Of a DNA stretch of 64,000 nt, positions 9,034 to 57,017 are shown piece after piece. Every line of letters starts with the position of its first letter. Position 1 is the first letter of the stretch. The notes under the pieces were generated by a model. The model was not told the origin of the DNA, did no database searches, and worked only from the letters and a program-made list of their open reading frames with translations. The translations under genes and the position numbers were made by a program. Origin of the DNA: Anthoceros angustus (lineage: Eukaryota; Plantae; Anthocerotophyta); NCBI GenBank assembly GCA_010909165.1, contig MU008168.1, forward strand, positions 372,001 through 436,000. The letters are read 5' to 3'.

Positions 9034-9065
9034 AACACGATATCTTGTGAAGGGGGTGAATATTC
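9034..9065 (+). repeat. Left TIR of the Sola1-like element
   Basis: AACACGATATCTTGTGAAGGGGGTGAATATTC. Confidence 0.9.
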
Positions 9066-9358
9066 GAACCCCCTTCCGTGAAATGAAAACCCTCTTAGCA
9101 CATGACACACAGTCCCGAAATATGCGTTTTAGCTCTTTTTAAAGAAAGGTCGACCATGGTAGAACACGTTGTATTAAAAAAAAACGTATTCGCGCAACAA
9201 AGACATGAAAACGGATAGAGGGCGCCGGCGGCGGCGCCATTTCATTGTTTCTTTGGAACTGGCAAAACCGAAGACATCAATTGCCGCAATGGAACGGTTC
9301 CATAAAACATTACGAACTAAACGAAGCAGCAGATGCACATGAGATGAGAACACTAAGC

Positions 9359-10775
9359 CTATTCCCTAGGGCTAACTTGGGACTCGCCAGGGGGCAGAGA
9401 AAACTCCGAATCCATTACAATAGCCAGATTTCGCAAGCGCTCCACTTCCTCTTCATCAAAGCTATCGTTCTCCCCCAACGCCCTTGTGTCTTCCTGTTCT
9501 CTTGTGGCGTCGTCGTCAAGGGTCGGAAGTGCCACATATCAAAGTTTGCTGCCCATCGCCAAAAGATCACCGTTTTGGTCTTGGCCTTGCGTTTAAGGAA
9601 ACAACTGCTGCGAGTCCTTCACGATACACCTCCTTCGCCCGAGTGCATAAGACCTCTGCGGTGGGCGTCAAGCGTCGACTCTTCTTGAGAGCGGAACCTC
9701 ATGCCCGGCAATCCTGTGGTATGTATCACCGCACACCTCAAGTCACTAAAGATACAATTCGCCGCCTGAGGGGAAGCGATAACGTTGTCCCACTCCGGAG
9801 CATACGTCCAAAATCCAATCCCCTCTCGCGAAGGTTCGATAAGTTTCATCATAAGCCCGGAGGCCTCGGTATGGGCAAACTACCGACTTGTCTTGGGACA
9901 TGTACACTGTTTCTTCTGGCAAGTATCGTGTGCGATCACGGACCTCCATTGTTGAAAGTGCCGTGCATGGCATTAGGCATCATTGGAACTCTATCCTTGT
10001 GAATCCATCTCCCATGCCCCACCCTCGTGACATATTCCACGGTTTGAATCCACCCATCATTGTTCATGTTGGTCTTGTCCCATACAAATGAGACCAAGCC
10101 CCTTTCTTGCTCCACTTTTCGCATTGACTCCCTCACGGTGTGAGCCTCCTCCACACCATGCATGACAATCATTCTCAACTCATCCAGTAGTTTTCTCCAT
10201 AAAACTACGCAAAGCAGTGTCCATCATCATGTCAACTCGTTTGTCCAAGGGCCCAATTTGAAACCCCTTGGAGCGTCCATCACGTGTGTGCTTAGGCCTC
10301 TCGAAATCCTCGCATGTCCAAAACATCCACTTTCCACTTGGTATTGTACTTGTTTGTCGGATGGAACATTGAAGACCTCAATCCTTCCTCAAGGTCCTTG
10401 TCTGCAAAACCTGCTCGTCCTCCAGTCCTTTCAATTATTTACTTGAAAATGAAATGTTGGAAGACATCGGAAGTTTGGAAAGGACCTCAATATCCTTCGA
10501 TTCTTGCCAAACACATGATGGTTAGTCAAAGCAAAAGAAGCGAGAGGGCGGCGGCGCCTCCTCGAACACACATGGGCGGGAAACTAACCTTTCCAGCAAA
10601 AGCGGTTTGAAAGCGGGACAACATCCGTACATAATGCGGATATTCTTCTCGCACCTCGGTGAACGAAGAGCACCCGGTGTTTACCATAGCAACTTGTATG
10701 ACATGGAACTTCTTCCGCAGTGATCTCCTCGTCCATGCCCTTCAAATCAATAAGTCGATTAAAACTTTTACGCAT
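9359..10775 (-). pseudogene. 3' part of cargo gene: beta-class N4C/N6A DNA methyltransferase domain plus acidic tail (frameshifted)
   Basis: In order: VMDAPRGFKLGPW (DPPY-like motif IV, 10277-10266); FVWDKTN..QTVEYV; VCPY.RPPGLMMKLIE..R.GDWILDVCSGVG..IAS..NCIF (motifs X/I, 9730-9880); acidic tail ending at TAG 9359. Confidence 0.75.
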
Positions 10776-53774: not shown

Positions 53775-54053
53775 CATGGGCGCGGCGGGCGGCGCCTCCT
53801 AACACCTGCCCATGGGCCGGCCGGCGCCCTCCTCCCTACACACACCGCCCATGGGCGCCGGCCGGCCGGCCTCCTAGCACACGCCCATGTGCGCCGTCGG
53901 CCGGCGCCCCTAACACACCGCCCATGGGCCGGCCGCGCCCTCCACACGCCCTCCTCCTTGCCGGCCGGCCCCCCACCAACACGCCTGCCTTGCCCATGGG
54001 CCGGTGGCGCCTCCCTAACACCTGCCCTACCCATGGGCGGCCGGCCGGCGCCT
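53775..54053. repeat. GC-rich degenerate repeats (cccatggg..ccggccggcgcc..cctaacac)
   Basis: Roughly five degenerate units inside the 2-kb element. Confidence 0.7.
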
Positions 54054-56985
54054 CATCCTCATTGTGTTTAAGAAAATCAATATGTAGTAGCTTAATAAGT
54101 TTGTAACTTGGGATTGTTGGTCTGGTGTTTGGGAAAAAGGTTTAGTAATGAATAGGTTTGGGTTGAGTTATTTAAAACCCATATCTTTTAAATAACTCAA
54201 CTTTGTTGATTTTAAGGATGCTTGCATGGGCGCATGGGCAACTAACTTTGTTCATTTTAAGGACGCTAGCATTGCCTTAAAGCCCAAGTGGTTGCATTGA
54301 GTGCTAGAAGGTTGAAGACTACATTGGCGACCTTTTGGATGAGGTTAGCAAACCCTAGATCTTGTGTGGCGATCCACACCGTCGGATGGTGCCGGGGAAT
54401 GATACTATTGAAGACGAGCAAGCAATGGAGGAGAACGATAACTTTGAGGCGGACGATATGGACCGCATCCGAATATATGTGGTTCTTGACTCGGTGTCGA
54501 TGCAAGGCATGGATGAGTCGCCAGCCGCACTCTTCAATGACTATTATCGATCGATGACCACTCCCTCCTTTAGCGGATGTTTGTTGCAATGTTCTTACGA
54601 CGATTAAAATGAGACTCCCTCTAATGCGAGGATTGTTTTCATTGTGTTCCACCACTTCAAAGTAAAAGTTTTCGGTTGTAATAAACATATAAAATGGCAG
54701 CCCTCTAAACATTCTACAAAAGCAGACGGGCCCACACCCCTCATGCTCAGGTTCTAGGGTGTTCACTTGAAAGTGCATCTTTTATCCTTTTGGTATGACC
54801 TCGAGAAAGGGTGTGCATTATCAAAGTAGGGCACATATGTTGTTCTAGGTAAGGTGTTCTTAAGTGGAGGTGTCTTGTAATGAAGAAATTGTATATCCCC
54901 TTCAAAAATTATCGTGTTCTTATATGAACATGCTTGTTGATATGGGTACTTTTGAAAAAGTGAAAGTGGGATTCCTTTTGGTCGGACATACTCATGATCA
55001 AATCGACCGGATGTTTTCTTGCTTCTCCAAAAGCTTGAAACATAAAAAGCTCACGCTTCCGCATTGTCGAGATCTGGTGCAAGCGTACGCCTACACGAGG
55101 TCAAGGTATTATTGAAGTGGCCGACTTAGGTCATATGTGTGGCCCATTACACAAGGCGGAGAGGACTCGATTATGGGCGGCGGTTAAGCGAACAACCTAT
55201 CGTTCCGGCACGTTCAAAATAACACGTGAAGAAAAAGCGGCCCGTGGGTTTGTGGCGGTGATCGAGCAAGCGATTACTCGACCTCGCCTCGATTAGAGGC
55301 GAAGGGGTTTGGAGTTTTGAAATTCGTGCCTTGGACACTATATTGCGTGCGCCGCTGATCGAGGGATAAAAACCACATGATATTATCTCCAAGCTGCCGT
55401 TGCTCATCTAAAGGCTGGTCTTGCGAACTTAGGCCGTATGTGACATCGAGGAGTTTTATGGTGGGAAGCTTTACGGGTGGACGAGGAGATTCTTGTGTGG
55501 AAAACAACATTGGCCTTGTGCTACACAAACCTTGGAGGTGGTACGCGGATCACAGTGTCTGACATTAACCTCTGCATGTTCGGATGAAGCCTTCTTTGGA
55601 GGAGGCATTCTTGAGGAGCTCCCACAACGAGATATGTATTTGGGAGCATACCAAAATCTGGGAGGCAACAACGAAATGTCACGGTTGAATGGTGATATCG
55701 CGAAATAAAGCGGGAATGTTAGTTGCGGTTCCAGCAACCGCATAAAATAGGCCCTTTTGGATTGGCAAGGTGACTTGTGTTGAACTACATGCACGAGCCT
55801 CACTTCCTTGTTCATTGGTACAGGCGAACACACGGATGCGTATGAAGGGAGTGCGTGGAAGAATATATAATCGGAGGGATGGCGGTAGGAAGCAACTCGG
55901 GAGGCAGGCGAAGGCTATCCGTCGAAGAATATCCAACAAGTTTTTGTTCACCAAGCAGTCATCCTCTATTATGGGTTCACTGTCTCGGAAACATTTGCAC
56001 TGTGGATAAGAAGGCCATAAAAGATAAGTTAATTGAATTGCGAGGTTTATTCAACCAGGAGTCAAAGTGCAACCGAGGGAAGAGGATGGTCGGGATCTGG
56101 GCCCAGATGAAGGCGTGGAGTCGGGCGAAGAGTAGGAAACACTCTGAATGATCTGTCATTTTCGCCGGGCAATTGATGAGGTTGTGCGTCATGCTCTATT
56201 CCTGTAGTTTGCAGTGCACAAATCTATGTGCAGTGCACATTTCTGAATAGTATGTACGCCCATGCTAGGCTTTTGGTTGTGGCTATCCTCTATGAAAAGT
56301 TGTAGACCTGTCATAGATATTATCTTCCATTTTTCAAGAGTTTGTGCTTACCATAGAGAAGGACACGTGGGGACTGTGGCCAAAGGGCCGACATCGGCAT
56401 TGCGGCATAATGTAAGGCATCATACGTTGAGCCGTGCGGGCATGTTCCTCTGTGCGTCATGACGGCGGGAACTAGTTTCCATTTTTAAGTTCATCATTGC
56501 GATCGGGGGTGGGCGGTGAATATATTTGCGACCACAATTGAGACTGTGCGGAAGCCATCCCCCACCCCAATCCTGAAGTCTTTTTCAAACCAAATCCGAG
56601 TTAAGGCCTGCAACTCGCCGCCATTCGCAAGGATCGCCGGCATGGCGGAAGGGCCGGCGGCGTCCTTCCTCTCAAACACTTTCATACCACGCCCGTAGTC
56701 AACTGTCCTCAAAGTTTCATCACCCTTCTTTTTGTAGATTTCATTTTTGCTCCACGGAAAAGACCGGCAATTACCGGCAGCAATGGCCTTTGTCATGGGT
56801 CTTGTCACGGACCAATTGAGGTTAACTCTAACACCATAACCCTTCGCGTTGAATGGATCTTCTATCACGGTTCATACTGATTGTCACCCTTCTTTTACTG
56901 TAATTGACCCATACCCCAAAAAGTGGGAGTTCAATGCCCATGTGAAACCCCCTTCAGAGGATATATGTCACAAAACCCTCTTCGT

Positions 56986-57017
56986 GAATATTCACCCCCT
57001 TCGAAAGATATCGCGTT
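56986..57017 (-). repeat. Right TIR of the Sola1-like element
   Basis: Reverse complement AACGCGATATCTTTCGAAGGGGGTGAATATTC. Confidence 0.9.

Follow-up and report, generated by a model that had tools for sequence, protein, structure and literature searches.

In the brown alga Ectocarpus, the Sola1-1_Ec32 transposon is present in many copies of 21.5 kb with 282-bp terminal inverted repeats (TIRs) and encodes, on the strand opposite to its transposase, a 1104-amino-acid protein with a ParB-like part and an N4C/N6A methyltransferase part, for which self-binding and self-modification were proposed (PMC12477816; Genome Biol, September 2025). The same study lists a 4-bp target site duplication (TSD), AACCG...CGGTT termini and Sola1-1_PPa as best Repbase match. 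Here, we analyzed a 64-kb stretch of the Anthoceros angustus genome (contig MU008168.1 of assembly GCA_010909165.1, positions 372,001 to 436,000), referred to as the window, in whose coordinates all positions are given. Its segment 9034-57017 very probably represents a single old copy, no longer active, of a Sola1-type cut-and-paste DNA transposon, which measured 9,054 bp before it was invaded by other elements and belongs to a family that combines a DDD transposase gene with a divergently oriented gene for a ParB-like/beta-class methyltransferase protein.

Several other systems share parts of this design. Phage and prophage fusions of ParB_N and N6_N4_Mtase (∼400 to 480 amino acids) have the same domain order and were the nearest named ESM Atlas feature clusters. 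In contrast, the eukaryotic proteins comprise ∼650 to 1,200 amino acids, with low-complexity N termini, a long helical linker and an acidic tail; their ParB part, which contains a GGNH[ST]xxA box, is too diverged for ParB_N, and their motif IV reads D-[AIL]-P-[YHR]-G. Giant DNA transposons with ParB-like and methylase accessory genes are also found in the red alga Bostrychia, where PAG2/PAG3 of Plavaka elements represent a putative N6-adenine methylase and a DNA-binding protein resembling ParB, the latter predicted to act on the element's own repeats (bioRxiv 10.1101/2025.02.11.637652). However, Plavaka belongs to another superfamily, and its ParB-like and methylase parts reside on separate proteins, paired with 2-oxoglutarate-oxygenase and SET domains. 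Chlorophyte-type Dam methylases fused with a helix-turn-helix of the ParB type, with an origin in phage ParB loci (Iyer, Zhang and Aravind 2016; PMC4738411), are likewise eukaryotic adenine-methylase candidates with a ParB-derived DNA-binding part, but are M.EcoKI/M.TaqI-like (Dam type) and not of the beta-class N6_N4 type seen here. MpDN4MT1a/b of Marchantia and N4CMT of bdelloid rotifers, finally, are bacterial-type amino-methyltransferases in eukaryotic nuclei as well. Unlike the transposon proteins, they are encoded by the host and have a motif IV of the TSPPY/SPP type, that of cytosine-N4 enzymes (TSPPY in MpDN4MT1), whereas the Sola1 accessory family has Asp first in motif IV and scores better against adenine-N6 enzymes. 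The MpDN4MT1 preprint does not contain the word ParB and reports no ParB-like domain.

The Anthoceros element is delimited by two TIRs, 9034-9065 and 56986-57017; the reverse complement of the latter is identical to the former at 29 of 32 positions, and both TIRs are directly flanked by copies of the TSD TCTT. Their inner 17-mer, GAAGGGGGTGAATATTC, occurs at only two sites in the window, which are mutually inverted. The 8-mer GAAGGGGG has five occurrences in the window, four of which lie in the termini of the main element, two per end (on the left at 9049, within the TIR, with an inverted copy at 9069; on the right within the TIR and at 56948). The outermost bases read AACACG...CGCGTT. Once four insertions are excised, with one TSD copy each kept for insertions 2 to 4, a backbone of 9,054 bp remains. 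A preliminary description made from the letters alone had proposed 32-bp TIRs around an ∼9.05-kb backbone with four nested insertions, and this architecture was confirmed, including separate ends for each insertion and separate TSDs for insertions 2 to 4. The parts of the element itself are as follows.

9030-9033, no strand: left TSD, TCTT, the same four bases as at 57018-57021
9034-9065, plus strand: left TIR, beginning with AACACGATATC (full 32 bp, AACACGATATCTTGTGAAGGGGGTGAATATTC)
9359-10775, minus strand: 3' piece of the accessory gene, which covers the linker, a beta-class amino-methyltransferase domain in decay, and the acidic tail up to the stop
9362-9538, minus strand: acidic C-terminal tail, from the translation; relatives likewise end in acidic tails
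24139-26055, minus strand: middle piece of the accessory gene, with a low-complexity region followed by a ParB-like plus helical domain (∼24140-24905, three frames)
42442-42946, minus strand: putative 5' piece of the accessory gene, a basic, low-complexity N terminus placed by position only
44355-44749, plus strand: upstream conserved part of the transposase gene, for which tblastn/tblastx gave matches to the DUF7869 genes at L001 (Riccia) and L002 (Adiantum), collinearly with the parts further downstream
52502-52873, plus strand: transposase catalytic core, part 1, SIDGMDQ ... LDNTCEENKN (Pfam DUF7869, expect value [E] 8e-5, profile positions 8-78)
54923-56148, plus strand: transposase core, part 2, and C-terminal region, with LVGHTHDQIDRMFSCFSK (Pfam DUF7869, E 1.3e-16, profile positions 78-134)
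56986-57017, minus strand: right TIR
57018-57021, no strand: right TSD, TCTT, abutting the right end

Fragments of the plus-strand transposase gene matched DUF7869 genes of Riccia sorocarpa and Adiantum nelumboides collinearly across insertions 3 and 4, and one tblastx match to the Riccia gene crossed the junction of insertion 4 (67% over 43 residues). Since the two fragments compared with Pfam (52502-52894 and 54864-55112) cover adjoining parts of the DUF7869 profile, the domain is contiguous exactly if insertion 4 is removed. The coding sequence is split over several frames. Its blocks SIDGMDQ, DNTCEENKN and LVGHTHDQIDRMFSCFSK resemble MDGANQ, DNTVAENKN and MVGHTHIQIDQIFSCFAK of Sola1-1_Ec32, and the TSDs of both the main element (TCTT) and insertion 4 (CTTA) have the 4-bp length listed for the Ectocarpus element. 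From this sequence evidence, with the core blocks compared by eye, membership of the element in Sola1 is probable and well supported; the likeness of the termini to those of Sola1-1_Ec32 is limited to the 3 to 4 terminal bases. The TSD length, the DUF7869 matches and the core blocks thus agree with the Sola1-type identity and plus-strand DDD transposase that had been suggested before.

Apart from the 4-bp TSD, the Anthoceros and Ectocarpus elements have in common AAC...GTT termini, the transposase blocks DNT-x-x-ENKN and VGHTH-x-QID-x-x-FSCF, and an opposite-strand gene for a ParB-like protein with a methyltransferase part predicted to generate N4-methylcytosine (4mC) or N6-methyladenine (6mA), the accessory proteins being likened by description only. 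In contrast to the 21.5-kb Ectocarpus element with its 282-bp TIRs, the element studied here has 9.05 kb and 32-bp TIRs, is dead and resides in the genome of a green plant. Since an element with the same gene design has been published (PMC12477816), the assertion that such a gene had not been described together with a Sola-type element does not hold. A literature search found no report of this Sola1/ParB-methyltransferase pairing in land plants, which is absence of evidence only.

The pieces of the accessory gene lie on the minus strand within the TIRs and face the plus-strand transposase gene (44355-56148). A relative (P0001) aligned with its residues 1-201 to 24748-24155 and with its residues 230-276 to 10714-10583 (E 2e-6). 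As the alignment continues on both sides of insertion 1, the accessory gene extends across it. Thus, of the three-piece gene originally proposed, the middle and 3' pieces belong to one gene, whereas no homology was detected for the putative 5' piece (42946-42442), the translation of which holds three stops. The acidic tail that had been claimed was present in the translation. The gene contains at least 7 frameshifts in all, which were deduced from the fact that blocks contiguous in the relatives sit in different frames without room for introns: two lie within the ParB-like domain, one each precedes motif IV and the PY-x-x block, two fall within and just after motif I, and at least one precedes the tail. 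In addition, two adjacent in-frame stops (10224-10229) interrupt the conserved blocks. The accessory gene therefore is a pseudogene and not an open frame. With both genes broken by four insertions, at least 7 frameshifts and in-frame stops, this copy is dead and cannot act.

When the longest open fragment of the accessory gene (24002-24787) was searched by HMMER against 1.84 billion representative sequences, 37 proteins were retrieved (best E, 1.5e-27 at 36% identity), and a family profile matched the middle piece at E 1e-39. The named relatives are from Chara braunii, the liverwort Riccia sorocarpa, the fern Adiantum nelumboides and Ginkgo biloba, with weaker ones in the animals Owenia and Mercenaria. 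The animal relatives of the ParB-like module (P0014/P0056 of the annelid Owenia fusiformis and P0035/P0058 of the bivalve Mercenaria mercenaria) matched at E 8e-7 and 5e-4; no N6_N4_Mtase Pfam match was obtained for their gene models, and in the genomes of animals the module may accompany cargo of another kind. Neither the window fragments nor the relatives matched Pfam ParB_N, and a family profile of the ParB part found among PDB sequences only chance matches (Mnd1, an allergen; E ∼0.3) and no ParB. Since sequence profiles failed for this part, the structure of the corresponding Riccia domain (P0015, residues 125-470; 33% identity with the window across 148 residues) was predicted from a 29-sequence alignment, which yielded a model with a predicted local distance difference test score of 88.6 and a predicted template modeling score of 0.83. 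In a Foldseek search of the PDB, all 13 matches at E ≤0.001 were ParB, Noc or Spo0J-type chains (best E, 2.4e-5), followed beyond this threshold by KorB (E ∼0.01), PadC and sulfiredoxin, with alignments of ∼270 columns. The predicted fold supports a ParB-like domain for the family by way of its relative P0015: the ParB-like assignment made from the window sequence found no counterpart in the ParB_N profile, but agrees with the ParB/Noc/Spo0J-type fold of this relative. In the window, the domain is whole but spread over three frames, one with QIRRVDE (24885-24905), one with LCMIDPSEC (24793-24819) and one from LGGNHT onward. All motifs on which the assignment had been based were present, the remaining ones being LGGNHTYAAM (24710-24739), VYCGL (24638-24652) and LATDHN (24599-24616). 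True ParB proteins possess an arginine-rich nucleotide-binding box, GxxRxxA; the conserved box of this family is GGNH[ST]xxA instead.

No relevant Pfam match was obtained for ten fragments of the accessory gene in the window, because the gene is shattered. Its relatives, however, matched PF01555 (N6_N4_Mtase), with E 7.6e-18 for Ginkgo P0009, 7.8e-19 for P0041 and 1.1e-10 for Adiantum P0013. On the contig of the closest relative (L003), the open reading frame following the ParB-like one matched PF01555 at 3.1e-6, above Pfam's own threshold. A methyltransferase profile built from the relatives alone, with the window excluded, was searched against 165 fragments, and its top three matches were all on the minus strand and collinear. 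Together with the two catalytic motifs, they are located as follows.

10230-10388, minus strand: profile match, motif IV block (E 0.8)
10263-10277, minus strand: motif IV, DAPRG (closest relatives, DLPRG)
9939-10223, minus strand: profile match, W-x-K-x-N block (E 9e-3)
9749-9979, minus strand: profile match, PY-x-x and motif I block (E 4e-4)
9788-9820, minus strand: motif I, DWILDVCSGVG, followed by two frameshifts (SGTT, 9783-9794; ANCIFSDL, 9739-9762)

Pairwise BLASTP of the motif IV, W-x-K-x-N and motif I blocks against the matching L003 blocks gave E values of 0.002, 0.024 and 0.003, respectively. Hence, the window fragments lack a Pfam match of their own, but they match a profile of relatives which in turn match PF01555, and to this extent the proposed methyltransferase domain was recovered. 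Among PDB sequences, the family profile matched M.MboIIA (E 1.7e-10), in an alignment spanning motifs IV to I, and M.RsrI (1.8e-9), and further DpnA, CcrM, rotifer N4CMT (3e-5) and M.PvuII (0.076). Motif IV precedes motif I on the minus strand, as had been noted before, and this order is that of the M.MboIIA alignment. Because of the better scores against adenine enzymes and the Asp at the first position of motif IV, 6mA would be a more likely mark of this family than 4mC.

Motif IV itself raises a question about catalysis. Canonical motif IV is (D/N/S)-P-P-(Y/F/W), whose aromatic residue as a rule forms a stack with the flipped base. In all of this family, the motif begins with D-[AIL]-P instead, followed by Tyr or His in Riccia (DIPYG), Adiantum (DAPYG), Chara (DLPYG) and Ginkgo (DIPHG), and by Arg in L003 and L004, both with DLPRG (∼nt 2575 of L003 and ∼nt 2403 of L004), as in the window. 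As the Arg is found in two sequences with an identity of only 36%, it is probably a trait of this sub-family and not a product of decay of this copy. Given the usual role of the aromatic residue, the D-x-P-R-G branch may be inactive, altered or non-methylating. The accessory protein of the sub-family might then be a factor that binds DNA and whose methyltransferase-like domain is dead; it would act via its ParB-like and helical parts, e.g., by bridging or marking the ends for the transposase, and not by methylation. The Arg shared by the window, L003 and L004 where remoter relatives have Tyr or His argues against random decay and for this reading, and the D-[AIL]-P of the entire family and the motif I of L003 (GSGSG, versus GSGTT in relatives) point in the same direction. 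In contrast, the W-x-K-x-N block, PYQKP and motif I are kept enzyme-like, and an arginine is itself able to stack on bases. As both Arg-bearing sequences are broken, selection on the Arg state cannot be judged. Overall, we regard a dead enzyme in this sub-family as possible but rather unlikely.

The two genes of the element occur together in other genomes as well. In Riccia, the P0015 gene is arranged head-to-head with a DUF7869 gene, and in Adiantum the same transposase is encoded on the opposite strand ∼3 kb upstream of P0016. In the gene model of the Riccia locus (R1sor_010796, P0015), the exon with motif IV (YTLAIADIPYGF, in another frame; L001, ∼nt 12171, CM100795.1) is left out; the locus carries both catalytic motifs, has a second DUF7869 gene 5 kb downstream and may be more intact than annotated. 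Convincing TIRs were not found at the Riccia locus, and the TIR pattern of the window was absent from the loci retrieved for the relatives. Protein homology searches with P0009 and with the alignment A3 returned Ginkgo paralogues only, with no algal or phage link, and the 1104-amino-acid Ectocarpus protein was retrieved neither by these searches nor by the HMMER search.

This recurrence bears on where the minus-strand gene came from. Giant and cargo-carrying DNA transposons do take up genes, and the gene could accordingly be a host or foreign gene captured once (Pack-type), or a separate element inserted beside the transposase. Such an event would not explain the head-to-head pair in Riccia sorocarpa, Adiantum nelumboides and, by description, Ectocarpus; moreover, no TIR or TSD lies between the two genes in the backbone, and insertion 4, a related element, still carries a remnant of each gene, one at either end. 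These deletion scars argue against a founder without the accessory gene. Capture is thus largely refuted and, in our estimate, very unlikely; by comparison of these genomes, the accessory gene is a regular component of the family. By protein-language features, the named clusters closest to the protein are phage fusions of N6_N4_Mtase and ParB_N (scores of 0.88 to 0.89), which would fit an integrated virus or phage-like fragment with a ParB-methyltransferase fusion in place of a transposon gene; such scores serve as leads only. However, the gene lies inside the TIRs and TSD of a transposon and has a eukaryotic DDD transposase as its partner, the 37 relatives found by sequence are all eukaryotic or unassigned with not a single named viral protein, and other viral genes were not seen in the backbone, so that we consider a viral origin of the region extremely improbable. 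For the Sola1-type transposon with a divergent ParB-like/methyltransferase gene, several points have to be counted on the negative side. Its 5' piece (42946-42442) was assigned by position, and its accessory protein was likened to the Ectocarpus protein by description and not by sequence. The ParB-like assignment comes without a Pfam or PDB sequence match and draws on the predicted structure of a relative of 33% identity, and the methyltransferase assignment in the window on weak collinear fragment matches (E 4e-4, 9e-3 and 0.8) together with the relatives. Methylation is doubtful, since the canonical PP is missing from motif IV and this sub-family has lost the aromatic residue of the motif as well.

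The four insertions that split the backbone, in order of position, are as follows.

10776-24138, no strand: insertion 1, long terminal repeat (LTR)-like, with tandem ∼2.2-kb LTR copies ∼92% alike
26060-42437, no strand: insertion 2, a 16.4-kb TIR element of no recognized class, with a perfect 22-bp TIR, GGGTGCAAGCATGCTTTGGTGC, and TSD TCTT (26056-26059 and 42438-42441)
44750-51880, minus strand: insertion 3, a Copia-like LTR retrotransposon, the 224-bp LTRs of which are 97.8% alike, with GCATC as TSD and a YVDD reverse-transcriptase motif on the minus strand
52874-54918, minus strand: insertion 4, 2,045 bp, with TIRs AACATGATAATTTTGAAGGGG and AACACGATAATTTTTGAAGGGG and TSD CTTA (52870-52873 and 54919-54922)

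Insertion 4 is, by sequence comparison, an inverted, internally deleted, non-autonomous relative of the main element that sits inside the transposase gene of the latter. Its TIRs are clearly akin to those of the main element, and it has kept a remnant of the accessory tail (54426-54473, matching 9477-9430 at 77%) and of the transposase 3' region (53374-53451). Five tandem 23-bp repeats, each bearing GAAGGGG, are present at 52888-52984. Its position within the main element represents self-nesting in one transposon lineage.

Insertion 1 has no clean, recognizable TSD at its boundaries. Several ∼1- to 2-kb LTR-like copies, about 90 to 92% alike, are present at both of its ends, and it may be a non-autonomous LTR element. 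No Pfam domain was found in the largest open reading frames of insertions 1 and 2, including one of 574 amino acids in insertion 1 (16189-17913). Insertion 2 consists mostly of three sets of 1- to 2-kb tandem repeats; its TSD is the same target sequence as that of the main element, and no relation to the accessory-family profile or to the transposase was detected. Two L003 matches in insertion 2 (E 0.13) and one in insertion 4 (E 0.22) were weak and were taken as chance. The whole Sola1 nest is enclosed by a Ty3/Gypsy LTR retrotransposon (LTRs 4676-5233 and 57750-58340, 91% alike), which has reverse-transcriptase and integrase motifs on the minus strand at ∼6157-7807. Since the LTRs of this enclosing element are 91% alike and the LTR copies of insertion 1 ∼92% alike, the Sola1 insertion is old. 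A further repeat pair (1681-3059 and 61753-63091, 77% alike) lies outside the Ty3/Gypsy element.

In a working element of this family, the DDD transposase (DUF7869) would excise and insert the element and thereby make the 4-bp target duplications. In intact members, the accessory protein might be guided by its ParB-like part to the DNA of the element that encodes it, conceivably to the terminal GAAGGGG repeats, and its methyltransferase part could then mark this DNA with 6mA (more likely) or 4mC. Such a mark could time or limit transposition or blunt silencing by the host, as the authors of the Ectocarpus study proposed. As its design has already been published for Ectocarpus and the copy is dead, the Anthoceros element establishes no new principle. 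It adds a record from a green-plant host and a clean dissection of a four-fold nested element; new are insertion 4 as a deletion derivative of a related element, and the Arg in motif IV. This shared Arg is the most useful lead, as it casts doubt on methylation by this branch. We think it improbable that some land-plant members, e.g., the Riccia and Ginkgo loci with both motif IV and motif I, are intact, expressed and write 6mA or 4mC on their own DNA, with the D-x-P-R-G branch being a derived one that is non-catalytic or re-specified. If true, embryophytes would have a transposon-encoded, self-targeting system for marking DNA. Transposons with a DNA-modifying enzyme of their own bear on the conflict between element and host over epigenetic marks, and also on the entry of bacterial-type methyltransferases into eukaryotic genomes.

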